A stretch of 50,716 nt of DNA from Prasinococcaceae sp. CCMP 1430 (lineage: Eukaryota > Plantae > Prasinodermophyta), in assembly GCA_013416795.1 (NCBI GenBank), contig RQSC01000028.1, forward strand, positions 887,885-938,600. Reading direction: 5' to 3'. Position numbers and translations under genes: made by a program. The notes under the pieces are model-generated. The model did not search any database, was not told where the DNA came from, and worked only from the letters and a program-made list of their open reading frames with translations. Positions within the stretch are counted from its first letter, which is position 1, and every line of letters starts with the position of its first letter. Positions 1,126 through 45,064 of the stretch are shown one piece after another.

Positions 1126-1160
1126 GGCCGTGCGCGGGACAGGGGCGCTTGGGGGGGGGG

Positions 1161-20892: not shown

Positions 20893-21169
20893 CGCTGCCG
20901 CCGCGCCTCGTTATGCGCGGAGCCCCCGCGCCTGTCTTGCCTCCCGCGCGCTCGCGCCCGCGAGGCCTCCCTCGCGACCCCGCCGCCACGCTGTCGCGTC
21001 CACAATCCAGCTGCCGACGGCGGCAGCGACGACGGCGACGGCGACGGCCGACGCGACACTCCCCCGCAACTTCCCCTCAGCAGTCCCTCCCCCCCCCTCC
21101 CTCTCCCGCCGTGGCNTCACCTCGCACCCCGCGCGCCCGCGGCGCGCGCGCCGAAATCCGCTCCCCGCC

Positions 21170-21600
21170 GCGTTTTTAGTTAAGGTTATGGTGTTTGGGG
21201 TTCAATGCGAGGGTTCGAATTAGGGTTGGCGCGCGATATGCGCCGAGGCGCGCGCGCGCGCGCGGGCGCGCGCGATTCGCGGAGCGCGCTTTCGTCGCGT
21301 TTTCGACCGCCGTTCCGCGCGTCGCGAGGTGCGAAGCGACCACGCCGCCGCGCGGATTCGCGCGCGGGCGATCGGCGCGCGCGCGCGCGCGCGTTTTCGC
21401 GCCGGGCGCGCGGGTTCCGCAACAGGGACGCCATCACGTGGGTCAGAAAGGAATCCATACAATGTCTAAAAAGTATTGAATATAAAGGAATCCACGTGTG
21501 GTCGCCACGGATGCGCGAATGAGAGCTCAAAACGAGTGCGAAGGGTGGAACCCACCTGCCTTTTTTTTTACACACTATTTATTTTTGATGGTTTTTTGGT
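21170..21600. promoter_or_regulatory. Divergent promoter island between DDM1 and SRP54 exon 1, with telo-box-like AGGGTT motifs
   Basis: AGGGTT at 21210 and TTAGGGTT at 21220-21227; AT-rich patches; TATAAA near 21481. Confidence 0.5.
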
Positions 21601-21635
21601 GGGGTCCTTTTGCTGCGGCGGCTGTTTGTTCGCCT

Positions 21636-21712
21636 GCGTGTGCGTGTGCGTGCGCGTGTGCGTGCGCGTGTGCGTGCGCGTGTGCGTGTCCTTGTGCCTG
21701 CGCGTGTGCGTG
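21636..21712 (+). repeat. Imperfect (GTGCGT/GTGCGC)n repeat just upstream of the SRP54 start codon
   Basis: Seen directly. Confidence 0.85.
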
Positions 21713-21794
21713 GGGCGGCAGAGAGCGCGCGTCTGCCGGTCGGTGCCTGCGGGGCCGCGGCGCGCGGCGTGTGCGCGCGCGTGCGCCGGCAGCC

Positions 21795-21845
21795 ATGGTG
21801 CTCAACGAGCTGGGCGACTCCATCAGCAATGCGCTGCGAAAGATG
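21795..21845 (+). CDS. SRP54: SRP54 exon 1 (MVLNELGDSISNALRKM), phase-0 donor GTGCGC at 21846
   Basis: gccATGG context; matches the canonical SRP54 N-terminus pattern MVLxxLGxxIxxALRx; these are exactly the 17 residues missing from the exon at 37311. Confidence 0.9.
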
Positions 21846-22520
21846 GTGCGCGCGCGCGCACCCTCACCCACCCCCCATCCCGTGCGCGCGCGGGCGCGCG
21901 CTCGCTGCGCCGGCGGGAGCCGGAGCGGGGGAGTCGCGCGGCCTCGCGCCGCGGGTTGGCCGCGCCATGGTCGCTTGTTGGCGACACAGGAGCACCCGCC
22001 CGCCCCGCCCCCCTTGCGGGGCGAGCGCGCCGCCGCGCCGTGTGGCACGCCTGCCAGCGCGCAGTCTCTCAAATGCGACCCCGCAGAACGAGGGCGTTCA
22101 CGTCCGCGCGCACCCGCAGGCCGCGCAGCGCCACGCGCGCCACGGGGTGGTCGGGAGGGTAGGGGGCGAGGGCTCAGGGATGGGGCAGGGCGCCAGAGCC
22201 TTTGTCGCGCGCGGCGAAGGGGGGCGGGGCGGGTGGGCAGGGGGAGTGTGAGCAGCCGACAGCCCGCGCGCCCCCGCGCCGCTGCCGCTGCTGCTACATT
22301 CGGCGGACTCTCCCGTGGGGGTTCCCCCAGCCGCGCCCGCGCGGGCCGGACCGACGCGCGCAGGTGTGCGCGCGGGGGCGGGAGGGAGTGCGAGGGGGGA
22401 CGGTGCTGTGGGTACTGCGCGCGTGCGCAGTAATGGAGGGAACGGCGTGGACGCGGGCCGTGCTGCGAGGCACGGAGTGGCGTCGCGGGGCGCGGAGTGC
22501 CACAGAGCGCGCGTGGGACG

Positions 22521-23873
22521 ATGGATGACGGAGGCGGCGGCGGCGGCGCATCGGTTGGCGGCGGCAGCGGCGGCGGCGGCAGGGCGGCGACGCGGCCGTC
22601 ACTCCTGGGAGCGGCGGTGTTCTGGGAGGGCGGCGTTCCGCTCGCGGCGGTGGGAGCGATAGCTGTCGGCGATGGCGGCGGTGGTGGGGCGCACTCGCAG
22701 TTGCAAGCGACGTGCGCGCTGCTGGCGGCGCTGCGCACGCTGTACGGGAGTCAGGGTGACGGTGGCGACGACGAACGCCCGCCGCTTGAGGCGTTTCTAG
22801 AGCTGGGCGACCGCTGCGTAGCAGTTCACGCATGCAGCTCGCACAGCGGCGTATGCATCGCAGTGGCGTGCGATAATGCAGATGAGGCGGCAGGCGGCGC
22901 GGATGAGGCCACTCGCGCCGCAGCGGTGCTCGCCGCGCGGCATGTCGCCGCGCAGCTCGACGCGCAACACGGCAATGGCACGGGCGGCAGCGGAAGGCTG
23001 AGCAAGCTCGTTTGTGCCGCGGCTGCGCGTGCACGCGCAGCGGTGGACTCGTACGACGTGCACACGGCGAGCGCGAGCGCCGACGCTAGCGCGGACGTGC
23101 ACGCACGCACTGCCGCGAATGGCTTCGGCATCGACGAGTGCACCGCGCCCGAGCTGCGCAAGTTCGCAGGCGCGGTGATGTGCGGCACAGTGTCGTGCCC
23201 GCCACACGTCGCGGGATGGCTCGCGCCGATACTGCGCGCGCGTGGAGTGCGCGCAGCCGCGCTGCTTGACGTGCGCACGGGCGGAGTGCTCGTGCGCGAG
23301 GGCGCCGATGCTAGTGGGGCGGCGCGAGCGGTGTTCGCACCCCACGCCGTCGCGCGACCGAGCCTGGTCGCGCTCGCCGCTGGTGCAGCTGAGGGCGCGG
23401 CCGGAGCGAGCGTGCACGCGGCGCGAGTGGCAGGCTTTGAGGGCTTGCACGCCGCGGCGCTTGGAGCTGGGTTGGACACAGCCTTCGTGGTTTGCTACGC
23501 CAAAGAAGGCGCGTTCGCGGCGGTGGGCGAGGCTGATGTCGGGGCGGCGCCGGCGCACATCACCGAGGCACTCCTCGCGGCGCGCGCAGCCGCAGCGGAG
23601 GACTTTGGAATGGGTTGCGTCGCCACACACCTGGATGCTGGCGATGGCGACGACAGCGAGGTTGAGGACGTGCTCGCTCACTCTCCTCTACGAGCTGAGC
23701 GCTCTGCCCCTGTAGACATGGGTGCTACCCTGGGCGACGATCTGGTTATCCCTCTCAAGACGCCTTCGGACGTGCGCGCCCGACGGCTCACGCCTGCAGC
23801 TACGGGCGAGGGCGCTGCCCGCGGCGCTGCCCTGACAGACGGACTGGCCAGCACACCTCGCATCGTCTGGTGA
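22521..23873 (+). CDS. Uncharacterised Ala/Gly-rich protein, 450 aa; N-terminal region possibly a Fuzzy-type longin domain
   Basis: Long ORF with coding codon bias. GGVPL...ATCALLAALRTLY...VAVH...VCIAVA pattern resembles a longin fold (inference). Confidence 0.6.
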   Translation: MDDGGGGGGASVGGGSGGGGRAATRPSLLGAAVFWEGGVPLAAVGAIAVGDGGGGGAHSQLQATCALLAALRTLYGSQGDGGDDERPPLEAFLELGDRCVAVHACSSHSGVCIAVACDNADEAAGGADEATRAAAVLAARHVAAQLDAQHGNGTGGSGRLSKLVCAAAARARAAVDSYDVHTASASADASADVHARTAANGFGIDECTAPELRKFAGAVMCGTVSCPPHVAGWLAPILRARGVRAAALLDVRTGGVLVREGADASGAARAVFAPHAVARPSLVALAAGAAEGAAGASVHAARVAGFEGLHAAALGAGLDTAFVVCYAKEGAFAAVGEADVGAAPAHITEALLAARAAAAEDFGMGCVATHLDAGDGDDSEVEDVLAHSPLRAERSAPVDMGATLGDDLVIPLKTPSDVRARRLTPAATGEGAARGAALTDGLASTPRIVW

Positions 23874-23928
23874 GTGGCGGCACCACGCCGATTCAGGCGC
23901 GCGTGCAGTGGCGAATAAGAAGAGAACG

Positions 23929-25911
23929 TTATTCGACGAGTTTGAGCAAAATGGCTTTGAGCATGCGCGCCTCCTGCGACACCGTGCGCACGTTGTCGGT
24001 GCCCGCCATCGAGCCCGACTGGTTGAAGTTGCAGAGGATGTTCTTGCCGTGCAGGTCGGCCGCCTCGAGGAATGCGAGCATTTCGTGCAGAGAGGCGTCG
24101 GTCAACACGATCATGTGCTTGGCGAGGTTTTCGATGACCGCCATGAAGCACCGCTTGGCATAGAACCAGGTATCCGTCTCCAGCTTCTTATTATACGGTT
24201 CCAGGCTCTTGATTATGCGCGAAATGCCGAACTCGAAGTTCCCCTTGGCGCAGTACAGCGTTCCGATCACCAGGTTGACAATGCAGAGGTGGAAGGACTG
24301 CTTGTCAGGATCTTGGTACGCCTGCCTCTCCTCCTCCCTCTCGATGCGCCGCATGAGCTCCTCGGCCTCCTCATTCTGGCTCGTCATGATATAGCTCACG
24401 CACAGGTTCGCCAGCACGATCGCCGTCACGCCCAGGAGGTCCTCGCTGTGCTTCTCCGCGATGGGCTCGTAGTAGCGGATGGCCTCCTTGAACTTCTTGT
24501 CCTGCATGAAAAAGGTGTGGGCCACGTTGAGCCGCCACGTGTCATGTTCAGAGCAGAATTCGGCGCTCTGACGGAAGACGCGCTCGACCTGCTCGTAGTT
24601 CTCCATGTCCCAGTACACGCGCGCCATGGCCATCAGCCCAGGTATGTACGCCTCGAGCGCGTCGTCGTACAAGGCGATCGACCGGCGCAGCGACTCGTTG
24701 TCTCGCTCGATGCGCGCGTCCTGGATCTGCTTGGTCAGGCGACGCAGCACGTCCACGTGGCGCTTGGCGGCGACGTCGAACTTGCGGAACGCCTCGTCGG
24801 GGCTCGTTTGCGATGCGATGGTCGCCTCGAGGTACTCGTACAGGTCGGGTGTGAGGTGCTTGGAGGTCAGGTGGGCGTTCTCGGCCATCACGTCGGCGGC
24901 CTGGTCGAAGAAGCCGTGCGAGGGCTTGCAGTAAAGCAACAGCAGGTTGCCGAAGGTCTCGGGCGGGAAGGGCGGGTTCTGCAGCAGGAAGTTGAGCTTT
25001 TGGAAGCCCGTCTGCGGGTCGTCGTCCATGTGCATGAGCGCCTGGTTGTGCAGCGTCACCGGGTCGAGCTCCTCGTCCGCTCGTGGCGGCATGTCGGCGA
25101 GCGCCTCCTTGATGGCGTCCGAGTTGCGCATCTGGTACTCGATGGCCGCCTTGAGGTTGAACGCCTCCACCAGCGCGGTCTCGCGTAGCGTCTGTGAGTT
25201 TCCTACCGACCGCACCTCGACGCCATCCCCGTACGACCCCACGCTCAGCTCGGGGTGCTCAAGCATGCCGCGCTCGATCACCTCGGACACGCTCTTCACG
25301 GCCGGGCCGTACTGCTTGAGCTTGTAGTGGCACAACGCGTCGTTGTACGCGAGCTCCGACACGCCTATCGTGCTGCCACCCGGTGTGTCGGACGCCCTCA
25401 GCCCTTCGGCAGCCTTGGCGGCCTCCTCGAAGAGCAGCCTGGCGTCGTTGAACCGCCCCTCCTTGTACGCCACGCAGCCGCGGTTGTTGACCGTGGCGAC
25501 TGGATCGACGCCCGTCTCGTGTTGCGCCTGGTCGAGAAGCGCTTTGCACGTCGCCATCTCGTCCATCTCGTACGCGATCACCGCCTGCAGCGACACATCG
25601 TGCTGCGCCTTGGCCGCGCTCTGCGCCTCGGCGTATTCGCCGGCCTTGTAGAGCGCCTGCGCATGGTGCGCACGGTACTCGGGCACGTCTGGGTACAGCC
25701 GCGCGAGCTCCGAGTAGCAGCGCGCGGCCGCCGCGAAGTCTGACCCGCCATGAAAGTGGCAGTACCCGAGCAGCGAGAGCGTCGCGCGGCTCTGCGGCCG
25801 CTCCGCGAGCCGCGGCTCGAGCAGCGCGACCGCGTCGGCGAACTTCTGGTCGGCGATGAGGCCGTACACCGTCGCCGTGAGGTGGCCGTCCGCGGCCGCG
25901 CCGACGGCCAT
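23929..25911 (-). CDS. IFT70: Intraflagellar transport protein IFT70 (TTC30/DYF-1/fleer), 660 aa
   Basis: TPR array; ETALVEAFNLKAAIEY, DMPPRADEELDPVTLHNQAL, NPPFPPETFGNLLLLYC, HLCIVNLVIGTLYCAKGNFEFGISRIIKSLEPY. Confidence 0.96.
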   Translation of the reverse strand: MAVGAAADGHLTATVYGLIADQKFADAVALLEPRLAERPQSRATLSLLGYCHFHGGSDFAAAARCYSELARLYPDVPEYRAHHAQALYKAGEYAEAQSAAKAQHDVSLQAVIAYEMDEMATCKALLDQAQHETGVDPVATVNNRGCVAYKEGRFNDARLLFEEAAKAAEGLRASDTPGGSTIGVSELAYNDALCHYKLKQYGPAVKSVSEVIERGMLEHPELSVGSYGDGVEVRSVGNSQTLRETALVEAFNLKAAIEYQMRNSDAIKEALADMPPRADEELDPVTLHNQALMHMDDDPQTGFQKLNFLLQNPPFPPETFGNLLLLYCKPSHGFFDQAADVMAENAHLTSKHLTPDLYEYLEATIASQTSPDEAFRKFDVAAKRHVDVLRRLTKQIQDARIERDNESLRRSIALYDDALEAYIPGLMAMARVYWDMENYEQVERVFRQSAEFCSEHDTWRLNVAHTFFMQDKKFKEAIRYYEPIAEKHSEDLLGVTAIVLANLCVSYIMTSQNEEAEELMRRIEREEERQAYQDPDKQSFHLCIVNLVIGTLYCAKGNFEFGISRIIKSLEPYNKKLETDTWFYAKRCFMAVIENLAKHMIVLTDASLHEMLAFLEAADLHGKNILCNFNQSGSMAGTDNVRTVSQEARMLKAILLKLVE

Positions 25912-26405
25912 CGCGCGCGCGCGGGTTGAAGTCCGAGGCGGCTGCGGCTACGGCGGGCCGCGGCCCTCCCAGCAAGCGGGGGCCTCCCACGCCGCGGGCG
26001 CGCGCGGTGTGGTGCGCGCGCGCGCTCCGCGCGCGCGCATTTGACTGCCGCATCCGCACAGCTGAAAAGCAACGCAAAAAAAAAAGGCAACGCGGATCGC
26101 CATCAAAACCCCTCCGATTTTTGAACCGTTCTCTGCGGGATTCTGCGGAAAGGCCCATCGAAATTTCCTACAGAAATCTCGAATGAAGGCTTTTGTACCT
26201 CGACACGTCCAGAACGCCAACTCGAAAATCCCGCGCGCGCTCTGTGATGGCGGTTTCCGCAGGGCGACATCCACGCCTCGAGCGCCCCTGGGCTGTGCAC
26301 CCGCTCGCGCCGAGCTCGCTGACTCGTCGGCGCTACGAGGAGAAAAAGACAGTACGTAGTATGAATACACGCAGCCGCGCGGCGCACAGGCGGCGCGCGA
26401 GGGCC

Positions 26406-27619
26406 CTACGCCGCCGAAGGCTTGACGATGAGCTTGCGCTCGATCGCCGCCCGCGTGGGCGTTTTCAGGTCCCACACAATGCCGAGCTTCTCCAGCAGGA
26501 GGAGGCTGTAGTAGGTGAAATCCACCTCAAACCAGCGCAGGCCCTGGCGTGCCGAGCTCGGGAATGCGTGGTGATTGTTGTGCCAGCCCTGTTCCAATGC
26601 ACACCGCGAGCAGGGCGAGACAAGTGAGGGTCAGCGCTTGAGGGCGTAGGGTGGGGGCGCACTCGTCTCGCAGAGGTGCAACGGGCGCACGCTTTGCCAT
26701 TCCTCGGATGTCAACTACACGTACCTCGCCGTGCGTGAGCAGCGCGAACCACCAACAGTTGCGGCTATCGTCGCCGGAGTTGAAGCGCCGCTGGCCCACG
26801 ACGTGGACCAGGCTGTTGATGCCGTAGCTCGCGTGGTTGGACAGGATCGTCGACACCACGAATCCCCACAGCAGGCCGTCGAGGCCACCCAGCGCGTAAA
26901 ACAGCGGAATCGATCCCAGAAAGAAAATGTGATGCCGATCGTCCAACCACTTCAGCTCTGCGAGCGACGACGGGCCAATGTGCGCGAGGCGCGCGCTCTC
27001 TGTCAGCTGCCGTGCGTTGGCCCAAGCGGCGCACGCGCACGGCGACATCGCTCAGGGGCAATCCCGCCATATCCTCACCTGGAAACTTGTCCTGATCGAG
27101 CCAGTCCGGCACGTAACTCTCACGGATGTGGTTGTATTCGTCGCTGCACATGAACCAGCCCATGTGCGACCACGCGAAGCCGTGGCGCGGCGAGTGCGCG
27201 TCCTCCTCGCCATCGCTGTGCTTGTGATGGTGACGGTGCATGCTCGACCACCACACGGGCCCACGCTGGCCAGCCATGCAGCACGCCGCGCCGAGGATTG
27301 CCTGAAACCAGCGGCTTGTCTTGAATGACCGGTGGGAAAAGTATCTATGGTAGCCGCACGTCACCACCCACATGCGGACGACGTAGCTGCCGACGAGCCA
27401 GGCCGCGCCATTGGCCGTGAGTGGGTGGAGCACGCACGTCGCGAGCGCGGCCGCGTGCAGAAAGCACATGAAGATGGAGGTCTCGTCGGTCTTCATGGAG
27501 CGAATGGTCTCCCAGAGGCCGTACTCGCGGTTGTGCACGGTCGCCGTCTTTAGCTGCGATGGCGTCCTCTCCGCCGCCACCGCCGCCGCCGCCGCGCCGC
27601 CGCTGCCCGCCCGCGCGCA
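26406..27619 (-). CDS. Membrane delta-9-type fatty-acid desaturase (ADS/DesC/OLE1 family); introns 27078-26958 and 26724-26589; 5' end in the gap
   Basis: His boxes HRYFSH, HRHHH and HNNHH; GFAWSHMGW; both GT-AG introns restore the frame. Confidence 0.92.
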
Positions 27620-28050
27620 NNNNNNNNNNNNNNNNNNNNNNNNNNNNNNNNNNNNNNNNNNNNNNNNNNNNNNNNNNNNNNNNNNNNNNNNNNNNNNNNN
27701 NNNNNNNNNNNNNNNNNNNNNNNNNNNNNNNNNNNNNNNNNNNNNNNNNNNNNNNNNNNNNNNNNNNNNNNNNNNNNNNNNNNNNNNNNNNNNNNNNNNN
27801 NNNNNNNNNNNNNNNNNNNNNNNNNNNNNNNNNNNNNNNNNNNNNNNNNNNNNNNNNNNNNNNNNNNNNNNNNNNNNNNNNNNNNNNNNNNNNNNNNNNN
27901 NNNNNNNNNNNNNNNNNNNNNNNNNNNNNNNNNNNNNNNNNNNNNNNNNNNNNNNNNNNNNNNNNNNNNNNNNNNNNNNNNNNNNNNNNNNNNNNNNNNN
28001 NNNNNNNNNNNNNNNNNNNNNNNNNNNNNNNNNNNNNNNNNNNNNNNNNN
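27620..28050. other. Assembly gap between the divergent desaturase and Brr2 genes
   Basis: Run of N. Confidence 0.99.
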
Positions 28051-28119
28051 CGCAGCTGCTGCCCGCGCCCGCGCCGTCCGCGGAGCCCCGCCCGTTGCAT
28101 CCGTCCGAGGGAAGGGGGG

Positions 28120-31100
28120 ATGTCGCGCGCGGCGGAGCAGCATGGCCACCGCGAGGGCCGGCGCGTCAAGCTCGACGGCGCGGGCGGCGCCGAGGCGCAC
28201 GCGCGCTTTCGACAGTACGAGTACAAGGCGGTGCGTCACGGCGCGACGCGGCGCGCGGCGCGTGGCATGCGTGCTCAGGCATGGGCGCGGGCGTACTTGG
28301 GAGGGAGGACGCGCGCAGTACTGTGCTGCGCGTCCGCGCGCACGCCTGCGATCGTGCCGGGCGCGTCTGCGCCCGCGTCTGCGCGGCGCCGCGCACGCCG
28401 TGCGCTCCTCCGTGCCCCACCTGACGCTGACGCGCGAGCGCCGCCGGCGCCCCGGCTGCCATGCAGACTGCGAGCCTCGTGCTCACGTCGGACGCGTTCA
28501 AGAACCGCGGAGCGCGCGAGCCGAGCGGCCTGCCGGAGTCGCTCGCCGGCAGGGTCGACGCGGCCTCGTTCGGCTCGCGTGCCCGGCCCGATGTGAAGGA
28601 GGTACGCACCGCAGACGCCGCCCTAAAATATGTCGCCGCTGAGCGTCCCGCAGCCCAGCGTCCATGTGCCGAACAGAACGCGCCAGCGCGGCGCTGCCAG
28701 GGCCTGCCTGATTCACGCTGACACGCGAGGGCTGCCCATTGCCGCTTCGCCACCCGCTCGCCACCTCGCTGCTCGTGGACGCGCGCGCGGGTTCGGGCCC
28801 GGGCACGCCTACTCATGCAGGGGTTCGAGGATGCCAAGGGCAAGCGCGCGGCTGCGCAGGCGGCTGGGGGGCGGCAAAAGAGGCGGCGAAGCGGCGGCGG
28901 CGGTGCTGGCGGGGTGGGGCTGGCATCTCAGTCCGTTCTCACGGTCGGCTTGGATACCATCTACCAGCCGAAGACCAAGGAGACGCGCGCGGCGTACGAG
29001 GTGCTGCTCTCGACGATCGGCTCGCAGTTCGGTGACCAGCCCGCGGACGTGCTGCGCGGTGCCGCCGACGAACTCCTGCTGGCGCTCAAGGACGAATCTA
29101 TGACCGACCCGCAGCGCCAGTCGGCCTGCTCGTCGCTACTGCCGGGGCTGGACAAGGATGGGTTCGCACGGCTCGTCGCGCTCGGGAAGCGCATCACGGA
29201 CTTCGCGCCACCCACAGAGGGCACGCAGGCGGACGATGCTGGCGGCGACGCCGGCGATCTCGACGACGACGTCGGCGTCGCGGTTGAATTCGAGGACGAG
29301 GAGGACGAGGATGAGGACAAGGAGGGTCTGCTGGCCGAGATCGAGTCAGACGAGGACGCGTCTGGCGACGACGAGGCTGAACCGGCGACTCGGCAGGCCG
29401 GCGTGGTGGGTGACATGGACGTGGGAGGGGACGGGGGCGCGGCGCAGGACGATGGCCTGCCGGTCCAGTCCATCGATGCGTACTGGCTGCAGCGCGAGCT
29501 TGAGAAGGCCTTTCCGGGCAAGCAGCCCGCCGAGTGCCAAGCGCTCTCAGAGGAGGTCCTCGGAGCCCTCGACGAGGCGGACGCGCGCGAGGCTGAGAAC
29601 AAGCTCGTGCTGCTGCTTGACTTCAGCCACTTCGACCTGGTGAAGCTTTTGCTGTCGAACCGTCTAAAGATCGTGTGGTGCACGCGCCTCGCGCGCGCGA
29701 CGTCGGAGGACGAGCGCAACGAGCTGAAGGGGCAGATGACCGCCGCGGGCGGCCCGTTGGCGGCCCTCGTCGAGGCGCTCAGTGCGACTCACACCAGCGC
29801 GAAGGATCGCCAGCGCGACCTCGAGGCGAAAATCCGCGAGGAGGCGCGCAGGCTGCGCGGGGCGCAAGGGAGCGACGCCGCACCCACGCGCGCGGGCACC
29901 TCGGGCGGTGTGTGGCACCAGGGGGCGCTCAAGCCCATCGAGCTTGACGAGCTGGCCTTTTCGCAGGGCGGGCAGCTCATGTCAAACACGCGCTGCGAGC
30001 TGCCGCAGGGCAGCTATCGCACCACCAAAAAGGGTTACGAGGAGGTGCACGTGCCCGCCCTGAAGCCCACGCCCTTTGGGGAGCAGGAGAAGCTGCGCGA
30101 GATTGCTGCCCTCCCGTCGTGGGCGCACCCAGCCTTCGAGGGCATGAAGACGCTCAACCGCGTGCAGAGCCGCGTGTGCGACTGCGCGCTTTTCTCGGGA
30201 GAGAACATGCTGGTGTCGGCACCCACCGGCGCGGGCAAGACAAATATCGCTGTGATGACTCTGCTGCACACCATTGGCTCGTATCGCAAGGAGGATGGCT
30301 CCATCAACCTGGACGGCTTCAAGTGCGTGTACATTGCGCCCATGAAGGCGCTGGTGGCAGAGATGGTCGGCAACCTTGGCCACCGCCTGGAGGCTTACGG
30401 CGTGAAGGTGCGCGAGCTTACCGGTGACTCCTCGCTCTCTGCCGCCGAGCTCAAGGAGACACAGGTCATCGTGTGCACTCCCGAGAAATTCGACATCGTC
30501 ACCCGCAAGGCCAACAACCGCGACTTTGCTACCAAGGTCAAGTTGATCATCATCGACGAGATCCATTTGCTGCACGACACGCGCGGGCCCGTGCTCGAGA
30601 ACGTGGTGGCGCGCACGATTCGCAACGTGGAGTCAACGCAGCAGATGACGCGCATCGTTGGCCTCTCCGCCACGCTTCCCAACTACAAGGACGTGGGCGC
30701 GCTCCTGCGCGTGGACGAGGAGAAGGGCCTCTTCTTCTTCGACAATAGCTACCGTCCGTGCCCGCTGCAGCTGAGCTTTGTGGGCGTGACCGTGCGAAAG
30801 CCGTTGCAGCGCTTCCAGCTAATGAACGAGATCACGTACGAGAAGGTGCTGGCTTCTGCCGGCAAGCACCAGGTGCTCGTGTTCGTGCACAGCCGCAAGG
30901 AGACGGCCAAGACGGGCAACTACCTGCGCGACACGGCGATGGAGAAGGACGACCTCCCTCGCTTTCTGAAGGAGGACGGTGCGAGCCGCGAGATCCTCAC
31001 CACCGAGGCGGAGGGCGTCGCCAACGCGGACCTGCGCGCCCTGCTGCCGCATGGCTTCGCCATCCACCACGCCGGCATGGCACGCAAGGACCGCACACTG

Positions 31101-34100
31101 GTGGAAGATCTGTTCGCAGATGGCCACGTGCAAGTGCTCGTGTCGACTGCGACGCTTGCGTGGGGTGTCAACCTTCCCGCGCACACGGTGATCATCAAGG
31201 GCACGGACGTGTACAACCCTGAGAAGGGCGCGTGGGACAACCTCGCGGGCATGGACGTCATGCAAATGTTCGGCCGTGCGGGCCGTCCGCAGTACGACAC
31301 ATTCGGCGAGGGCGTCATCATAACCGGCCACTCGAGTCTGCAGTACTACCTGTCGCTCCTCAACCAGCAGCTGCCGGTTGAGAGCCAGCTCGTGGGCAAG
31401 CTCACGGACTCTCTCAATGCCGAGGTGGTGCTCGGCACCATCTCGTCCGCGCAGGAGGCAGTCGACTGGCTCGGGTACACGTACCTGTACGTGCGCATGT
31501 TGCGCAACCCGGTGCTGTACGGCATCGGCCCGGAGGCGCTTGAGGACGACAAATACCTGGAGGCGTGGCGCGCTGCGCTCATCCACCAGGCAGCGACCAT
31601 CCTTGACCAGCGCGGCCTTGTGATGTATGACCGAAAGACGGGTGAGCTGGTGAGCACCAGCCTGGGTCGCGTGGCGAGCCACTACTACATTACGCACGGG
31701 ACCATCGCGGCTTTCTCAGACAACATGTCGGCCTGGATGGGCGACATCGAGGTCTGCCGGCTGTTCAGCCTGGCGGAAGAGTTCAAGTTTTGCGGCGTGC
31801 GTGCGGAGGAGAAGGTCGAGCTCGCACGCCTGCTCGAGCGCGTGCCCATTCCGGTCAAGGAAAGCCTAGATGAACCCTCCGCCAAGATCAACGTGCTGCT
31901 GCAGGCCCACATAAGCGGCATGTCGCTGGAGGGCCTCTCGCTGATGTCGGACATGGTGTACGTCACGCAGTCGGCCGCGCGACTCTTCCGCGCCATGTAC
32001 GAGGTCGCCCTACGGCGCGGCTGGTCGGCGCTGGCCCTGCGACTCCTGCGATTCTGCAAGATGGTGGCGCTGCGCCAGTGGTCGAGCCAGTCGCCGCTGC
32101 GGCAATTCCGCGCGCTGCCCGAGGAGGTGCTCTCCAAGCTCGAGCGAAAGGATTTGGCGTGGGAGCGCTACTACGACCTCACGAGTCAGGAGCTCGGCGA
32201 GCTTGTGCGTGCTGCCAAGCTCGGGAGGGCGCTGCACCGCCTCGTCCACCAGTTCCCGCGCCTTGAGCTCGCCGCCCACGTGCAGCCGATCACGCGCTCG
32301 ACCATGCGCATCGACCTCACCATCACGCCCGACTTCCAGTGGGAGGACAAGGTGCACGGCAGCGCGCAGTCCTTCTGGATCATGTGCGAGGACGCCGATG
32401 GCGAGAAGATTCTGCACAGCGAGTACTTCGTGTTGCGCAAGGCCTTCCGCGAGGACGACCACAACGTGTCCTTCATCGTGCCGGTCACCGATCCCACCCC
32501 GCCGCAGTACTTCGTGCGCGTTGTGTCGGACCTGTGGCTCGGCTCCGAGGCGGTGCTGCCCACCTCCTTCCGCCACCTCATCCTGCCGGAGAAGAACCCG
32601 CCGCCGACGGAGCTGCTCGACCTGCAGCCGCTTCCGGTGGGCGCGCTGCGAAACCCGTCCTTCGAGCGGATCTACGAGTCGCGCGGCCTGCGCCACTTCA
32701 ACCCGATTCAGACGCAGGTGTTCAACGCGCTGTACGGTGGCGACGACAACGTGCTGGTGGCCGCGCCTGCTGGCTCCGAGCTCATCGTGTGCGCCGAGTT
32801 CGCACTCATGCGCATGCTCATCGCTACAGGTGGCGAGGGGCGTTGCGTCTACGTGTCGCCTGTCGAGGCGCAGGTCAAGGCGCGCGCCGCGCGCTGGCAG
32901 GCCACGATTGGAGCCGCCGCGGGCGTGTCGGTGGGCGTGCTGACGGGCGAGAGCACGGCCGACGTGAAGATCCTGGATCGCTGTCGCGTCGTGTGCGCGT
33001 CGCCGGAGCACTGGGACAACCTCAGCCGCCGCTGGCGCCAGCGCAAGCACGTCCAGGCGCTGTCGCTCTTCTTGGCGGACGAGGTGCACCTGCTCGGCGC
33101 CGGCGACACTGGGCCGGCCATGGAGGTGGTCATCAGCCGCATGCGCTACATTGCCGCGCAAACGGGCAACCCCATCCGCGTGGTGTGCCTTGGTGCCAGT
33201 GTTGCCAACGGGCGCGACCTCGGCGATTGGATCGGCGCGCCACCCTCGGGCATTTTTGCATTCCCCAACGGCGCCCGTCCCGTGCCGCTGGCCATTCGCA
33301 TCGACGGCTTCGCGCCGTTGTCAGTTGACATGCGCCAGGACGCCATGGTGCGTCCCACGCTGCACGCGCTCGATGAGGAGTCCTCTGCGAGCTGGCAGGC
33401 CATCGTATTCGCGCCCACCCGCCGATACGCGCGCTCGGCCGCAACAGAGCTCGCCGCGCTGCTCGCGGGCAGCGCGCATCCCACGCGCTTCCTGCACTGC
33501 GACGAGGCCGACCTCGCTCCCTACCTGGAGCAGGTCGAGGATGCCGCGCTCAAGGGTTCGCTCGAGTTCGGCGTGGCGGTCATGCACGAGGGCCTCGCGC
33601 CCGCGGAGCGCGACGTGGTGCGCAGGCTCTTCCTGTCCGGAGCCGTGCAGGTGCTGGTGGCGTCCGCGAAGGAGGCGTGGGGTCTCGACCTCGCAGCGCG
33701 GCTAGTGGTGGTGATGGGCACGCAGACGAGCGACGCGCGTGACCCCGCGTCGGCGGACTTCCCCGTGACGGACGTGCTCGCGATGCTCGGCTGCGCGCGC
33801 ACTTCGGGCGGCGGCGGCGCGTCGGGCTGCGCGGCGCGCGTCATGTGCGCGGCGCCGCGTGTCGAGTACTACAAGAAGTTCCTGCTCGAGCCGCTGCCCG
33901 TCGAGAGCCACCTCGACCTGGTGCTCAATGACCACCTGAACGCCGAGGTCGTGTGCCGCACGGTGGAGAACAAGCAAGACGCTGTGGATTACTTGACTTG
34001 GACTTTCTTTTACCGCCGACTGCCGCGCAATCCCAACTTCTACAACCTGGCGGGCGCAGAGCACAGGCACATCTCGGAGCACCTGTCGGAGCTCATCGAG

Positions 34101-35168
34101 GTGACGCTCGGCGAGTTGGAGGCGTCGAAGTGCATCGCCATTGAGGACGACATGGACCTGAGCCCGCTCAACCTGGGCATGATCTGCGCGCACTACTACG
34201 TGCGCTACACGACCATCGAGCTGTTCGCGTCGAGCCTGGCGGCAAAGACTCGCACGAAGGGCATCCTCGAGGTGCTCGCCGCGGCCACCGAGTTCGACGA
34301 GTTGCCGTTGCGTCCGGGGGAGGACAACGTGGTGCAGCGCCTGCTCACGCACCAACCGCTTGCGCTGCCTGCGGCGGGGCTGGGCGTGTCGGGTGCCAAG
34401 GCGCACGTGCTCATGCAGACGCACATGAGCCGCACGCCGGTCAACCCCGAGCTGGCCGGCGATCGCAGCATGGTGGTTGCCGGCGCGGTCAAGCTGCTCC
34501 AGCCGATGGTGGACGTCATCAGCTCGAGCGGCTGGCTGTCGCCCGCGCTCGCGGCGATGGAGCTGAGCCAGATGATGGTGCAAGCGCTGTGGGCCAAGGA
34601 CAGCCCGCTCATGCAGCTGCCGCACATCACCCGCGAGGTGGCGAAGCGTTGCACGGATGCAGGCGTAGAGGGCGTGTTCGACCTGCTCGACATGGAGGAC
34701 GACGAGCGCAATCGCCTGCTCGACATGAGCGATGCGCAGATGGTGGACCTCGCCAACGCAGCCAACGCCTATCCGAGCGTCGAGGTGGAGTACGCCGCGC
34801 CGGAGGCGCCCGTCGCCGCCGGCGAAGCCGTCACGGTCGCCGTGCGCCTCACGCGCGAGTGCGAGGAAGACTGGGCGCCAGCGCCCGTGCACGCCCCGCA
34901 CTTCCCGCAGCCAAAGATGGAGAATTGGTGGGTGCTTGTCGGCGACGCGGCGAACAACTCGCTGCTCGCCATCAAGCGCGTCACCCTCAAGACCGCGGCA
35001 AAGGCCAAGCTCACCTTCGCCGCGCCCGAGGCCGCCGGCGCGAGCGACCTCACGCTGTTCCTCATGAGCGCAGATTTTATGGGGTGTGATCAGGAGTATG
35101 AATTCAAGCTCGAGGTGGTCGCGGCCATGGTCGAGGCCGGAGATGAGCCCCCGGCCGCCGAGGAGTGA
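28120..35168 (+). CDS. BRR2: U5 snRNP 200-kDa helicase Brr2; exons 28120-28230, 28467-28601, 28821-35168
   Basis: GGAEAHARFRQYEYKA|TASLVL N-terminus; APTGAGKT, IIDEIHLLHD, QMFGRAGRPQYD; two Sec63 units; second helicase cassette. Confidence 0.98.
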
Positions 35169-35366
35169 CCGCGCTGCGGGCGCTTGCGGACGCTCCTCTC
35201 GCCGTTGTGAAGTATAGACTAATAATTTGATTTGGCGAGGGATCGTACACACATTGCATCAACATGATCGAGCGAAGTGCGCCGTGGCTCGAACCAGCGA
35301 TTCAGAGAGTACCGAATACATGCACGCTTGCTTACATACACAAAGAGACTAGTACTGTACACACAG

Positions 35367-35370
<4 letters not shown>

Positions 35371-35404
<34 letters not shown>
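35371..35404. repeat. (AC)17 microsatellite between convergent genes
   Basis: Seen directly. Confidence 0.95.
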
Positions 35405-35407
<3 letters not shown>

Positions 35408-35424
35408 CGCTCGCGAGAGTGCTG

Positions 35425-36288
35425 CTACTGCTTAGTGCTGCGCGCCGCCGCCACAGCCGCGCGGAAGTCGTCTCCGCACGAGACGACCTCGCGCTCGAGG
35501 TAGGCGACGAGCGCGTCGCCCTCGGGTCCCTCGTCGACGGCCACGGTGAACGCCGGTGTGCGCCACCGCCTTGCGGGGAATGGCGCGTCAGCGTTGCCCG
35601 TCGGCGTGATGGTGAAGGCGCGCGGCACGAGCCTGCCCGTGTCCGCCTTGACGTGGCTGACCACCACCGAGCTTGCGGTGAGGAGGTGCGAGCGCCAACT
35701 CGACATGCCCCCAACCAACGCGCGCACGCCCTCGAACCACGCAGTGGGCGGCTCGCGCATCTGCGGGTCCACCCTCAAGCCAGAGGTGTCGACCGCGGCG
35801 GGGTGCGCGGCCTCATCGTCCTCCGACTCGTATCCTGTGCCAGACTCGTCGGTCACGAGAGTGTGTTTTGCCACTGGCCAGGGGGTCTTTTGCCGGTCCT
35901 CCAAACGCCGCTTCTTGGTGGTGGGCTTGTGCTCCCCCGCCCCTTTGCCTTCGTACAGGAGCAGGAGGAGGTCGTCGACGCTGGCCTTGGAGCCGCCGCT
36001 TGGGCGCACAACGGCGAGCACGCGGCGCTTGCCGTCGCGGACGTCTGCCGCCGAGCTCGGCTCGGCGCCGCGCGCACGCGCCACGAGCCCGCGCAGCGCC
36101 TCGGCCGCCGCGCGGCCCGCTGCGACCGACATGACGGGGTCCTTCGGCGTGCGGGTGAACAGGACGGGCGCGGCGCAGACGATCTCCACCCCGGCTTCCT
36201 CGAGCGCCTTCTCCGCGGCGCACTTGGTCGTTCGGCGCATCACCTGGCAGCGCCCGCCGTTCACGAAGGGGAAGGCGGCGACCGCCAT
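35425..36288 (-). CDS. Uncharacterised protein, 287 aa, with a putative NLS (KKRRL) and an acidic patch
   Basis: ATG in gccATGg context, GC3-biased codons, and TGTAA on the minus strand about 90 nt downstream. Confidence 0.72.
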   Translation of the reverse strand: MAVAAFPFVNGGRCQVMRRTTKCAAEKALEEAGVEIVCAAPVLFTRTPKDPVMSVAAGRAAAEALRGLVARARGAEPSSAADVRDGKRRVLAVVRPSGGSKASVDDLLLLLYEGKGAGEHKPTTKKRRLEDRQKTPWPVAKHTLVTDESGTGYESEDDEAAHPAAVDTSGLRVDPQMREPPTAWFEGVRALVGGMSSWRSHLLTASSVVVSHVKADTGRLVPRAFTITPTGNADAPFPARRWRTPAFTVAVDEGPEGDALVAYLEREVVSCGDDFRAAVAAARSTKQ

Positions 36289-36739
36289 GATGGTGGTATC
36301 GGTATCGGACGCGGCGGGCGCTGTCTATTTTTTTGTCGGCCAGCCAGATGCGGCGAGCGGCGACTCGCGCGTGCGGTGTGGCAGCGCGCGCGCGGCCGCT
36401 CCCCCCCGCCCCCGACCCAGCCCACGTTCCCGCCTCGAAAAGGGCGCTCGTCGGCGCCCCTCGTCCCTCGCCTGCCCGCGCCTCACGCCGCGGCGCTGCC
36501 GCCCACCTCGCGCGTGCGGCGCCGCCGCGCGGCGCGCGCAGACGAAAGCGGAAGCGCCGTGTCCACCCACAACGTGTATGTACATCGCGTCGATGATCTC
36601 CCGTGGGTAAATTAAATGTGACACAAAAGGATGCACGTGCGGGGCGCAAGCAGGTGTGCATGCGCGTGTGCACACACACATGCGCGCGCAGTGCCGCAGA
36701 CACACACGCTCACACCTCAGCACGAGCAGGATTCCGAGG

Positions 36740-36767
36740 CACACACACACACACACGCACACACACA

Positions 36768-36811
<44 letters not shown>

Positions 36812-36952
36812 CACGTGCACAAGCACATGCACATGCACATGCGCACACACATGCACATGCACATGAACACACACATGCACAATCACACACACACACACAT
36901 GCACACATGCACATGCACACACACACACACATGCACATGCACACACACACAT

Positions 36953-37011
<59 letters not shown>

Positions 37012-37012
37012 C

Positions 37013-37044
<32 letters not shown>

Positions 37045-37088
37045 GCCAGCGAACACACGCAAACTTCCAACGTGGCACACACACACAC
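36740..37088. repeat. About 350-bp compound alternating purine-pyrimidine tract (CA, CACATG and CACGCA units)
   Basis: Seen directly; it produces spurious His/Thr and Cys/Val ORFs. Confidence 0.97.
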
Positions 37089-37310
37089 GCCCGCACCGCG
37101 CGCCCGCGCGCGCGCTGCTACCCGGCTGACGCACACGCGCAAAAGGCGTCGCGCGCCGTCAGAGAGGGTTTACACGTACGTCACACTGAATGTAAAAGGT
37201 GCAAGTTTGTGCGGATGATGCCGGCGTGTAAAACCCTTAAAACCCTTAAAACTGGAACCTTAACCTCGGTCGCGCGGCGTGCACGCCCTGTCGCGCGCGC
37301 GGCTCCGCAG

Positions 37311-38762
37311 GGCGACTCGGCGGTGGTGGACGAGAGCGCCGTGGACCAGTGCCTGAAGGAGGTGAGCACCGCGCTGCTGCAGTCGGACGTCAACGTCAAG
37401 CTCGTCATGTCGCTGCGCGAGAACGTGAAGAAAGCGGCGCTCGCCGGCGGCGACGCGTCCAACCGCCGCAGGCTCCTGCAGCAGGCGGTGTTCAAGGAGC
37501 TGGCGGCGATGCTCAACCCGGGCGTGGAACCTTACCGCCTGGACCGACGCAAGAAGGACGGCAACGTGGTCATGTTCGTCGGTCTGCAGGGCGCGGGCAA
37601 GACGACGACGTGCACCAAGTACGCGCGCTACTACGCCAAGAAGGGCTTCAAGGTGGGGCTCGTGTGCGCGGACACGTTCCGCGCGGGCGCGTTCGACCAG
37701 CTCAAGCAGAACGCCACCAAGGCGGGCATTCCGTTTTATGGCTCCTACACTGAGACCGACCCCAGCACGATCGCGCGCGACGGCGTCGCCAAGTTCCGCG
37801 AGCTCGGTATGTCGCTCATCATCGTCGACACGTCGGGCCGCCACAAGCAGGAGGCCGCGCTCTTCGAGGAGATGGAGGGAGTGCAGCGCGCGGTGGAGCC
37901 GGACGAAGTGGTCTTCGTCATGGACTCGCACATCGGCCAGAGCGCCGCCGACCAGGCGAGCGCCTTCAAGGCCAGCGTGAACGTGGGCAGCGTGATCGTC
38001 ACCAAGATGGACGGCCACGCCAAGGGCGGCGGTGCCATCTCGGCGGTGGCCGCCACGCAGTCGCCCATCACCTTCGTGGGCGTGGGCGAGCACGTGGACG
38101 AGTTCGAGAGGTTCGAGGCCAAGGGCTTCGTCTCCAAGCTGCTGGGTATGGGCGACATGATGGGCCTCATGGACAAGGTCACCGACATCGTCGGGGCGGA
38201 CGAGGAGAAGCAGATGGCCATGGTGGACACGCTCACCTCAGGGGTGCTCACCTTCCGCATCATGAAGGAGCAGTTCTCCAACATCTCGGGCATGGGGCCA
38301 CTCTCGAGCGTGATGAGCATGATTCCGGGCATGAAGGACATCATCCCGCAGGGCGCGGACGGCCAAATGGAGGCGCGCTTCAAGCGCTTCAACGTCATCA
38401 TGGACTCGCTCTCCGAAAAGGAGATGGACGATACCAAGCCGAGCTTCGACGAGGGGCGGATACGCCGCATCGCGCGCGGCGCGGGCGTGACGGTCTCCGA
38501 CGTGCACGTTCTCATCGAGGAGTTCAAGCGGATGTCAAAGATGTTCGCCAAGATGAAGGGGTTCAAGCTGCCCAAGCACGGCGGCCCCATGTCGCAGCTC
38601 ACGCAGAACATGAACGCAAACACAATGAGCCAGATGCTGCCGCCGCAGCTGCTCAAGCAGATGGGTGGCGCGCAGGGGATGCAGCAGATGATGAAGGCCA
38701 TTTCGGGAGGCAAGCTTGGGGACCTCGGGGGGCTCGGCAATCTGGCGAGCATGCTCGGCTAG
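37311..38762 (+). CDS. SRP54: SRP54 exon 2 (rest of the N domain plus G and M domains)
   Basis: CAG acceptor at 37308-37310; GLQGAGKTTT, DTFRAGAFDQL, DTSGRH, TKMDGHAKGGGA; Met-rich M domain. Confidence 0.97.
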   Translation, partial: GDSAVVDESAVDQCLKEVSTALLQSDVNVKLVMSLRENVKKAALAGGDASNRRRLLQQAVFKELAAMLNPGVEPYRLDRRKKDGNVVMFVGLQGAGKTTTCTKYARYYAKKGFKVGLVCADTFRAGAFDQLKQNATKAGIPFYGSYTETDPSTIARDGVAKFRELGMSLIIVDTSGRHKQEAALFEEMEGVQRAVEPDEVVFVMDSHIGQSAADQASAFKASVNVGSVIVTKMDGHAKGGGAISAVAATQSPITFVGVGEHVDEFERFEAKGFVSKLLGMGDMMGLMDKVTDIVGADEEKQMAMVDTLTSGVLTFRIMKEQFSNISGMGPLSSVMSMIPGMKDIIPQGADGQMEARFKRFNVIMDSLSEKEMDDTKPSFDEGRIRRIARGAGVTVSDVHVLIEEFKRMSKMFAKMKGFKLPKHGGPMSQLTQNMNANTMSQMLPPQLLKQMGGAQGMQQMMKAISGGKLGDLGGLGNLASMLG

Positions 38763-38859
38763 GACCGGGTGTGGGCGACCGGCGCGGGGGCTTGCGCGCG
38801 CGCGGCGCGCGGCGCGCGCTGTTGTACTATAAGTTCTGACGTGTGACATGGCAACGCAT

Positions 38860-41307: not shown

Positions 41308-41840
41308 CGCGCAGGAGGCGGATCAGGGGCGCCCAAATCGAGAGAATCGCCGCTGCGCGGGGCCCCCGCGAACACCTGATGCAGGACCAAACCGAAGGCG
41401 CCCCCGCGGCCCCGCCAATTCTCTCACTTTGCCCCCTTCCGCCCCGCCTCGCCCTCGCCAGCGCGCTGCGCAGCACGCGGGCGTGCCCGCCCACGCCGTC
41501 ACGCAGCCCCGCGCCCCAGCACACTCATCCACACTCACACTGTGCACATCACCACCCACCCCTCGCCCCGCGCCCCACTCCGCTGCGCGGCCGCGACCGC
41601 TGTGGCGCCCCGCCGCGCTGCTGCGCCTCGCAGCGCGCGCCCCCGCAAAAAAAAAAGCCGATGTGATGTCATCACGACACGCCAAGTATTTATTCGATCC
41701 GCGCGTGCGCTGGAAGATTCCAATCCAAATCGGCGGCGGAGAAATACAGCAGATGTGGGATTCACTACATGCTGTACACACACACTCTGCGGCCGGTGCG
41801 GCGCGCGCGCGCTCACGTGACGTCCGCCACCTCGCCCCTC

Positions 41841-43586: not shown

Positions 43587-44672
43587 CCCCTCACCCCCTC
43601 ACCCCACCCCTTCACAAAAATGCCTCGCGGCACCGCGCTCGAGCGCAGCTACGCCACGGGGGACGGCGGGCCCGTGCCCTCGCGAGAGGGCGGCGGCGCG
43701 GGCGGCTGTAGCTCGCGGCGAAAGAAGGGGGCGAGGGGAGTCCATCCGTCGCCAGCGGCGCCTGCGGCGGCGCCAGCGGCGGCTCGCCCCCACACCCACC
43801 CGCGCCGGCCGTGCCGTCCGTCATTTTTCTTTTGTTTGCTTGGCGGCGGCGCCCAAAACCCTCGCACAGCCCACCCGCGCCTGCTGCGCGGGCGCGCGGC
43901 GCGCGCGGACGCGCCTGCTGCGCGGGCGCGCGGCGCGCGCGCGCGCGGCGCTCGCCCACAGCTTCACACCCCTCCCCCACCCCTTCCACTCTCCCTCCGC
44001 GCCGCGAGCGCACCTGCATCGCCGCCATGGCCGGCATTCCCTCTCTCGCGGCGCGCGCGCACAGTGGCGCGCGCGGGCGCGAGCGCGCGCACCCCACCGG
44101 CCCCGCCGCGCATGCGTTTCGGCCTACGCGTCCGACACCCCGGCATCGCCCAGCCACACCCTAGTAATCCGAGCGTGAACGCCCATTCCCCACTGTTCAC
44201 TCCGACGATCCCGGGGCATCGACGCCCGCTTGCCCCGGTGCGCCCCCTGGCGGCGCGGGCCCGCTCGGTGAGCGCCACGTCGCGGCGCGCGGCCACCACC
44301 GCGTTTTTTTGTTTTTTTTTTTGGAGAGGCGGCTCTCCTCCGGACGAACTCCTTCGTCTCTTCTGCCCCTTTTTTTTTTTTTTTAGTCTACGTTTTGCCT
44401 CCCTTCCGTTCCTCCGCGGCGACGCGGCGCGACGCCATTTTTGGAAACCCTCATTCGCCGCATGTCGGTACAGTACCCCAAATGTGAAGAGCAAAACCTC
44501 ATCCTGGCCGGCCGGCCGGCGCGCAGCCGGCCGGCCGCGGGCGGGGCACAGCGTACTAAAACACCGACCAACGCTCGCGCCTCGCAGCCTCGGCCTGGTC
44601 GGGCCGGTGTTGGGTGTCGCGGGTGAGGCCAAGGCCCGACCGACGCAGGCAGGGCCGGCGCGCCGAGCAGTG

Positions 44673-45058
44673 ATGACGGTCTCGCGAGTGCAAACTGGGA
44701 ACGCGAGAGCGGAGCGTGCATACGCGCTCATGGGCAAGGCCGTCGCGGATTCGAATGCGCCCGCGCAGGAGAGGGCGCTCGCGGCGCTCGTGGCGCTGCT
44801 CGGCGCGGGCGGTGCCGACGCCGCAGCGCAGCTCGCGGACTGCGCGCCAACACTCGTCGCCAAGGCCTTCGGCGGGCGGCCCAAGTCGTCGGCGCTCGCG
44901 GTTGAGGCGTGCGTGCTCATGGCCGGCGGCGGCCAGGTGGAGGGCGTGCTCGCGGCTCTAGAGAAGGGCTACAAGCACAAGGTTGGCAAGGTGGTGCTGG
45001 CGGCCGTGGGCGCGGCGAGGCAGTGCGTCGCCGCGGCGGGCGCCGCCGCGCTGCCGGA
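44673..45058 (+). other. 5' fragment of a TOG-domain microtubule polymerase (MOR1/XMAP215 TOG1); rest of the gene absent
   Basis: KAVADSNAPAQERALAAL...LVAKAFGGRPK...LEKGYKHKVGKVVLAAV matches the TOG1 pattern; similarity ends abruptly at about 45058. Confidence 0.75.
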
Positions 45059-45064
45059 GAGCAC

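Follow-up and report, generated by a model that had tools for sequence, protein, structure and literature searches.

Misplaced assembly blocks as the probable cause of a 15.5-kb split in SRP54 of Prasinoderma coloniale

The SRP54 exons and their mRNA

We analyzed a stretch of 50,716 nt (the window) from contig RQSC01000028.1, in which SRP54 lies in two pieces on the same strand with five other genes between them. Exon 1 comprises 17 codons (translation MVLNELGDSISNALRKM) with the donor GTGCGC directly 3', and exon 2 is immediately preceded by CAG and stays open until a stop codon at 38760-38762. A sequence check bore out both exons as they had been given in a preliminary description of this DNA, and recomputation returned the same spacing of 15,465 nt. 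Of these statements, other data contradict just one, the physical distance between the exons, and all such data come from outside the window. The joined exons encode a 500-aa protein identical to the EukProt model PRCOL_00004683-RA (P0122) of Prasinoderma coloniale. This protein contains an SRP54_N domain (PF02881, residues 6-81), which covers the helical bundle of the N domain together with the N-terminal helix that exon 1 encodes, followed by the SRP54 GTPase domain (PF00448, E = 1e-73) and the M domain (SRP_SPB, PF02978, E = 1e-25). The M17/G18 joint aligns with six homologues without an indel, and the 500-aa SRP54 protein model is correct.

The exon1/exon2 joint, proposed earlier as an RNA check, is present in RNA contigs of the same strain with 100% identity to the window, and one of them (X1) carries 111 nt upstream of the joint. 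It had also been suggested that the mRNA might start at an in-frame ATG at 37215, but such a start finds no support in the sole spliced RNA contig, whose 5' end holds exon 1. An exon-exon joint in mature mRNA is what a trans-spliced split gene would leave, but it does not discriminate, since a short cis intron yields the same mRNA. The joint is as expected of such an intron, and the preliminary description had found no resolved intron here above about 360 nt. A CTGAC branch site is indeed absent after the exon 1 donor (21846-22600); a single CTGAC occurs at 37126, 185 nt upstream of the acceptor, inside a tail that no other sequence supports.

Table 1. Positions of SRP54, the intervening blocks and the breakpoints within the window
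Feature	Position	Strand	Evidence or remark
Block B: SRP54 promoter region, 5' UTR, exon 1, first 86 nt of intron	21117..21931	+	Colinear with L001, L012, L013, L014
Minimal SRP54 mRNA 5' UTR	21724..21794	+	Transcript contig L015 begins at 21724
SRP54 exon 1	21795..21845	+	17 codons, donor GTGCGC; RNA joins it to 37311
Left breakpoint, single base 'A'	21932		Base-level comparison with L001 and L016: fits neither neighbor's natural continuation
12 initial codons (MARPTRGARPRD) of a conserved secreted, possibly oxygenase-like gene	21933..21968	-	Remainder of gene not in window
Block C1: ORF 22497-23873 (+), TTC30/IFT70, acyl-CoA-type desaturase (-)	21933..27619		Colinear with L016-L019, L033, 96-99% identity
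Assembly gap, divergent desaturase/Brr2 promoter region	27620..28050		Crossed by no contig
Block C2: Brr2, 287-aa ORF, (CA)n-rich microsatellite (about 36740-37040)	28051..37040		Ten metagenome/Logan contigs colinear from 28051
230-nt AT-richer tail, telomere-like/telo-box-like repeats	37041..37270		Matched in none of the loci compared
Intron end, last 40 nt, acceptor CAG	37271..37310	+	Tara scaffolds and X17/X18 contigs start matching at 37271
SRP54 exon 2	37311..38762	+	483 codons + stop, 1,452 nt; RNA contig X1 spans 37310-38780

The intervening block and its boundaries

Most genes named earlier between the exons were recovered. TTC30/IFT70 lies at 23929-25911 (-), supported by Pfam and homologues, and is followed by an FA_desaturase fragment (-) that extends into the assembly gap. 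Brr2 (+) spans 28120-35168 with at least three exons, its ATG at 28120 and its stop at 35168, the N-terminus being assigned from the 2197-aa protein P0380. The unknown minus-strand gene is a conserved 287-aa ORF (35425-36288). The label 'Fuzzy-like' for 22497-23873 (+) found no support in Pfam.

The N gap at 27620-28050 is located at neither breakpoint, as had been noted. The desaturase start codon is placed inside it because the minus-strand ORF is still open at the left gap edge, and the Brr2 ATG is 70 nt to its right. None of 15 metagenome contigs bridges the gap, which has extremely GC-rich simple repeats on its flanks, and continuity across it is unproven. A contig from a relative (L032), compared in order to bridge the gap, carries IFT70 among other neighbors and is not syntenic. 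At the far end of the block, seven of the ten contigs colinear with C2 stop in the microsatellite, one stops earlier (35423), and two run on into differing sequence absent from the window. Across the tail, the organism's DNA and RNA contigs leave 37177-37253 at zero depth, and the RNA contigs do the same for 37100-37253, although such a hole alone is no proof.

Comparison with other DNA placed the left breakpoint at 21931|21932 and the right one at 37270|37271. Neither has an N, and only outside data can bring the error to light. Block B (815 nt) is limited on its left by a single N at 21116, to the left of which scaffold L012 diverges from the window, and on its right by a breakpoint. By eye, the block ends show none of the terminal inverted repeats or duplications that mark mobile elements, only telomere-like short repeats. 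We considered a simple swap that sets block B straight after 37270 and rejected it: in L012, block B is preceded by 134 nt that match neither 37041-37270 nor any other window sequence.

The left junction also affects a second gene. Scaffolds L016 and L033 match the window rightwards from 21933, while leftwards they continue into 3.3 kb foreign to the window; a conserved gene is thereby broken off in the window after its first 12 codons. Among the cluster variants listed for this truncated gene, 14 of 15, drawn from many contigs, go on with GGAGG...AALAALL, which is encoded in those 3.3 kb. The breakpoints cut genes that are whole elsewhere, interrupting the SRP54 intron on one side and decapitating the conserved gene on the other.

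Scaffolds and window also disagree at other block boundaries: at the N at 21116, at extra sequence in 43279-45177, and at extra sequence in 48367-48501 together with an N. At 48.5-50.7 kb, blocks are swapped relative to the scaffolds, and a one-base 'A' spacer at 50278 resembles that at 21932. As a separate observation, the EukProt numbering lists SRP54 as PRCOL_00004683, BBIP10 as 4684 and TRAPP as 4686. Such close numbers could hint at the absence of five intervening genes, but the intermediate glycosyltransferase and MFS genes are likewise unaccounted for, and the numbering is not strictly positional.

Independent DNA across the SRP54 intron

Four metagenome scaffolds of Tara Oceans (L001, L012, L013 and L014; four samples in all), 98-99% identical to the window, jump from window position 21931/21949 to 37271. 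In L001, positions 1-283 correspond to window 21649-21931 and positions 368-4778 to window 37271-41683, and the 84 nt in between are missing from the window. This linking sequence is 88% G+C. All four scaffolds carry a contiguous SRP54 intron, as would not be expected of a trans-spliced gene; it is 208-210 nt long, with GT-AG ends and a CTGAC branch site. Two 570-aa read-through ORFs (P0125 and P0127) have the same short-intron arrangement, and none of the nine members of the SRP54 protein cluster has the window-type upstream extension; the contig matched for P0121 holds only a C-terminal fragment. In a relative whose SRP54 is 80% identical (L002 and L003), exon 1 is found 627 nt upstream of exon 2.

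Two genomic runs labeled as the same organism (X17 and X18), identified as DNA from their contigs of up to 142 kb, each contain a contig of 6,466 nt, at depths of 38 and 16, with 0 mismatches to 37271-39400. Precisely at 37271, this contig parts from the window and continues in a 356-nt overhang unlike it; the contig traverses 37271 without break or branch at a depth equal to that of the other contigs compared in these runs. The identical breakpoint and fitting length suggest that the overhang is the Tara-type intron. X17 and X18 probably share the strain of the window. Supported by 0 mismatches in 2.1 kb, we can guess that they represent CCMP1413, the strain of the mutation-accumulation study (PMC11884799).

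Both junctions of a giant host intron should recur in independent DNA of the organism. Instead, the right junction is contradicted by X17/X18 and by the four scaffolds, and the left junction is contradicted from both sides by metagenome scaffolds 96-99% identical to the window. Metagenome scaffolds may themselves be chimeric, and L022 and L027 differ beyond the microsatellite. An exact-pattern scan of JGI metagenome contigs left the window-type left junction unmatched, a negative without weight because the intron-end/exon-2 pattern shared by both forms was likewise unmatched, the locus being missing from that collection.

Origin of the split and comparison with known systems

We conclude, with a probability of roughly 0.9, that the 15.5-kb split of SRP54 reflects misplaced blocks in a scaffolded assembly rather than trans-splicing or a giant intron. 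SRP54 of Prasinoderma coloniale would then be an ordinary two-exon gene spliced in cis, in which a GT-AG intron of phase 0, ~210 nt long and containing CTGAC, separates a first coding exon of 51 nt from an exon 2 of 1,452 nt. The 815-nt piece 21117-21931 would have been set 15.3 kb from its true neighbor (37271 onward), and the 84 nt that would join both pieces in nature would have been left unassembled. The sequence 21933-37270 (15.3 kb) would be real genome sequence, whose natural left neighbor would be another stretch of 3.3 kb. Small contigs, broken at extreme-GC or simple-repeat stretches, were presumably misordered during scaffolding or gap closing. Of the three readings offered in the preliminary description, the exon pair and splice joint common to them stand, whereas its ranking of a misjoin as least likely, on the grounds that two breaks are needed, does not: both breaks exist. 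A 210-nt intron gives both the mRNA joint and the gene model PRCOL_00004683, so both are equally accounted for, and neither cis-splicing of a giant intron nor spliceosomal trans-splicing is needed.

The other readings would have to explain the same DNA contigs. A mixed culture or two gene copies, in which an intact short-intron SRP54 supplies the mRNA while a rearranged form was assembled (the two residing, say, on duplicated chromosomes or in different subclones), appears quite unlikely. It would suit the lack of N at the window junctions and the duplication of chromosome 18 in the CCMP1413 ancestor described in the mutation-accumulation paper (PMC11884799), but the X17/X18 contig crosses 37271 unbranched at a depth like that of other contigs, these runs have no contigs over 37177-37253, and the rearranged copy would also bear the decapitated gene. 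It is very improbable that, in the sequenced culture, a recent strain-specific rearrangement truly placed the five-gene, 15.3-kb block in the SRP54 intron, with the mRNA made by removal of a 15.5-kb intron or by trans-splicing. The version in which the assembly is right and the transcript is spliced in cis over 15.5 kb is likewise hardly credible. The exons do share strand and scaffold, the mRNA joint is 100% identical to the window, and the annotated PRCOL_00004683 consists of exon 1 plus exon 2. However, DNA contigs labeled as the same organism leave the window at 37271. The window also lacks the 84 nt that hold the natural branch site and has no CTGAC after the donor, transcription would need to pass through Brr2 and other gene ends, and a second conserved gene would be destroyed by this very junction. 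Trans-splicing, in which the spliceosome would join SRP54 pre-mRNAs from two separate transcription units, has a negligible chance of being correct; its sole support is the 15.5-kb separation in the assembly together with the mRNA joint, and it needs a correct assembly, which the scaffolds and X17/X18 contigs contradict.

The main value of our misassembly reading is quality control. As a representative of a deep lineage of green plants (PMC7455551), Prasinoderma coloniale supplies gene structures to comparative work. The assembly would hold misplaced blocks of sub-kilobase to multi-kilobase size that truncate genes and give a false impression of split genes and giant introns, and cases of 'split' genes or 'out-of-order exons' in it call for an independent DNA check before a biological reading. 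Were the block really in the intron, production of this essential mRNA would involve either trans-splicing or the removal of an intron that carries genes, and this in a compact genome where the other introns measure a few hundred bases.

The Tara Prasinoderma scaffolds and the relative (L002/L003) agree with SRP54 as reconstructed here in the exon 1 peptide (MVLNELGDSIS.ALR.M), in an intron after codon 17 in phase 0, in its GT-AG ends and CTGAC branch site, and in the convergent glycosyltransferase downstream. They differ in what fills the intron: in the window, the middle 84 nt of the Tara-type intron are replaced by 15,339 nt, while the relative's intron measures 627 nt compared with 210 nt. 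Split protein-coding genes whose transcripts undergo spliceosomal trans-splicing are known from Giardia. SRP54 resembles those genes in that its coding pieces, far apart in the assembly, meet in the mRNA at canonical splice-site motifs, but here independent DNA has both pieces adjacent, making a trans reaction unnecessary. Another parallel comes from the misplaced small contigs of scaffolded, gap-closed short-read assemblies, with which the locus shares a sub-kilobase block between an N and a one-base spacer, ends at extreme-GC or simple repeats, swapped neighboring blocks and genes cut at the joins; it differs from them in that the joins at 21932 and 37270/37271 are without N.

Exons, protein and transcript of SRP54

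The two exons of SRP54 lie 15,465 nt apart in the window, and their coordinates in the preliminary description are correct, with the expected translation and splice motifs found in place (see table). No CTGAC is present in the window sequence within 750 nt after the exon 1 donor. The preliminary description also held that joining the exons gives a full-length SRP54 without indels, and an alignment with six homologues agrees, the exon joint being indel-free. The joined product is identical to the EukProt model PRCOL_00004683-RA (P0122) of Prasinoderma coloniale, 500 aa in length, which establishes the window as DNA of this alga, and the SRP54_N (residues 6-81), SRP54 GTPase and SRP_SPB domains are all present.

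Exons 1 and 2 are joined in mRNA, since two transcript contigs link them. In a 1,582-nt contig from the RNA run X1, which covers 37310-38780, the final 30 letters of a loose 111-nt 5' end are the end of exon 1. In the JGI transcript contig L015, 100% identical to the window, the first 123 nt correspond to 21724-21846 and the remainder to 37310-41440. The junction that the preliminary description had proposed to look for is thus seen in both contigs, which we do not count as independent because one culture may underlie them. The 5' UTR of the mRNA is at least 71 nt long. A start at the in-frame ATG at 37215, raised earlier, is unsupported: RNA contig depth is zero across 37100-37253, a hole that by itself proves nothing. 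Only 98 nt separate the end of SRP54 from that of a convergent glycosyltransferase gene (38762-38860), and L015, a single transcript contig, spans the two genes, pointing to an overlap of their 3' ends or to read-through.

Features of the SRP54 region, in window coordinates
Feature	Position	Strand	Details
SRP54 exon 1	21795-21845	+	Translates to MVLNELGDSISNALRKM, then donor GTGCGC
TTC30/IFT70	23929-25911	-	Named homologues listed, about 56-63% identical, are tetratricopeptide repeat protein 30
Acyl-CoA-type fatty-acid desaturase	26400-27619	-	HRxxSH and HRxHHxxSD histidine boxes in translation
N gap	27620-28050		Between desaturase 5' end (-) and Brr2 ATG
Brr2	ATG 28120	+	At least three exons
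Conserved ORF	between Brr2 and SRP54 exon 2		287 aa
SRP54 exon 2	37311-38762	+	Acceptor CAG 37308-37310; open frame to stop 38760-38762

The SRP54 intron in other DNA

P0001, the closest database protein (100% identical over exon 2), led us to the Tara scaffold L001, where exon 1 occupies positions 147-197 and exon 2 begins at 408. By BLAST, L001 1-283 corresponds to window 21649-21931 (98.2% identity) and L001 368-4778 to window 37271-41683 (99.1% identity), and the same jump from 21931 to the 37271 region is found in L012, L013 and L014, scaffolds from three other Tara samples. The intron of the Tara scaffolds is 208-210 nt long, with GT-AG ends and a CTGAC some 60 nt before its acceptor; at 210 nt (L001:198-407; L012:880-1089) it is a multiple of three. 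The window lacks 84 nt of this natural intron (88% G+C), and a search for this middle part throughout the window did not find it. In several populations the intron is in frame and stop-free, so that ORF callers give read-through products of 570 aa (P0125, P0127).

Two runs dated 2024, X17 and X18, share their organism label with the RNA runs; with contigs of up to 142 kb, they are genomic. A 6,466-nt contig in each matches 37271-39400 without mismatch and continues for 356 nt unlike the window, leaving it at exactly the Tara breakpoint, 37271. In length, this overhang is compatible with the missing 84 nt plus the block at 21117-21931 back to its GT-rich microsatellite. The contig has zero mismatches to the window, whereas the Tara scaffolds diverge from it by 0.7-1.7%, which suggests that X17 and X18 are from the same strain as the window. 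CCMP1413 mutation-accumulation lines have been resequenced with Illumina and ONT (2025 paper, PMC11884799), and the runs, whose identities are coded, likely stem from that study.

The intervening block and other joins

Among the genes reported between the exons, IFT70, the desaturase and Brr2 are upheld as real genes, whereas a Pfam search gave no support for the 'Fuzzy-like' identity of the ORF at 22497-23873. The desaturase ORF extends, unclosed, to the edge of the N gap, inside which its start codon lies. On the left, scaffolds L016 and L033, from two samples, agree with the window to the right, beginning at 21933, and are preceded by 3.3 kb absent from it. A conserved gene begins MARPTRGARPRD at 21968-21933 (-) and runs on into this sequence; the window cuts it after codon 12 and proceeds with SRP54 intron sequence in reverse complement. 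The N-terminus of its product resembles a signal peptide, and inspection by eye shows oxygenase-like motifs; a Pfam search gave no match, and of the 15 variants listed for the protein's cluster, 14 cross the window's left junction point. Base 21932 ('A') fits neither neighbour's continuation.

On the right, seven of the ten contigs covering Brr2 end inside a (CA)n-rich microsatellite (about 36740-37040) and one more ends earlier, at 35423. The other two, L022 and L027, pass through it into differing sequences, both absent from the window; at least one is chimeric, or populations differ. Past the microsatellite (L022:8958-11909 and L027:8779-11141), one leads to a TPR-containing ORF pre-labelled RMD1-3 and the other to an ankyrin-repeat gene. 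The 230 nt at 37041-37270, matched in none of the contigs compared, include an island richer in AT whose repeats resemble telomeres or telo-boxes; X17/X18 depth is zero across 37177-37253, again no proof by itself. Short degenerate repeats of this plant-telomere-like or telo-box-like kind, TTAGGGTT / AACCCTTAAAACCC, lie at 21173-21230 and 37221-37262, oppositely oriented, each close to a block end and in an AT-richer island of a genome with 68% G+C.

Elsewhere, 43279-45177 (1.9 kb) is extra in the window, L012, L013 and L014 going directly from 43278 to 45178; it splits an MFS transporter gene (-) in its 5' region and is probably another misplaced piece. Compared with L012, 48367-48501 (135 nt) plus an N is extra, and blocks 48503-50277 and 50279-50716 stand in reversed order around a lone 'A' (50278); a 9-nt overlap (CGCACACGC) places 50279 directly after 48366. 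The single N at 21116 marks a join, to the right of which L012 matches the window and to the left of which it differs completely; the gene truly next to SRP54 on its upstream side may therefore be another than the SNF2-family gene at 18368-20392. In the genome paper (PMC7455551), the PacBio assembly has 22 chromosomes; the window's genome comprises at least 118 pieces, with several N runs within the window, which is thus probably from a more fragmented, scaffolded assembly.

Explanations for the exon separation

Of the giant intron, trans-splicing and misjoin offered in the preliminary description, the misjoin is favoured over the other two, as the Tara scaffolds depart from the window at 21931 and 37271, X17/X18 at 37271 and L016/L033 at 21933. 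Misplaced blocks in the assembly best explain the 15.5-kb separation (probability about 0.9), and SRP54 is an ordinary two-exon gene with an intron of about 210 nt, spliced in cis. It is unlikely that the culture carries both forms of SRP54; the X17/X18 contig is unbranched across 37271, at a depth equal to that of the other contigs compared. A real rearrangement specific to the strain, with a giant SRP54 intron, is slightly more improbable still, and trans-splicing of SRP54 is very hard to credit. The N gap leaves the choice of misplaced blocks unchanged because neither breakpoint is at it; its flanks are simple repeats of extreme G+C content, where all metagenome contigs stop, none crossing 27620-28050, and a relative's contig is non-syntenic there. 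A relative whose SRP54 is 80% identical has the same exon 1, with exon 2 following about 627 nt downstream.
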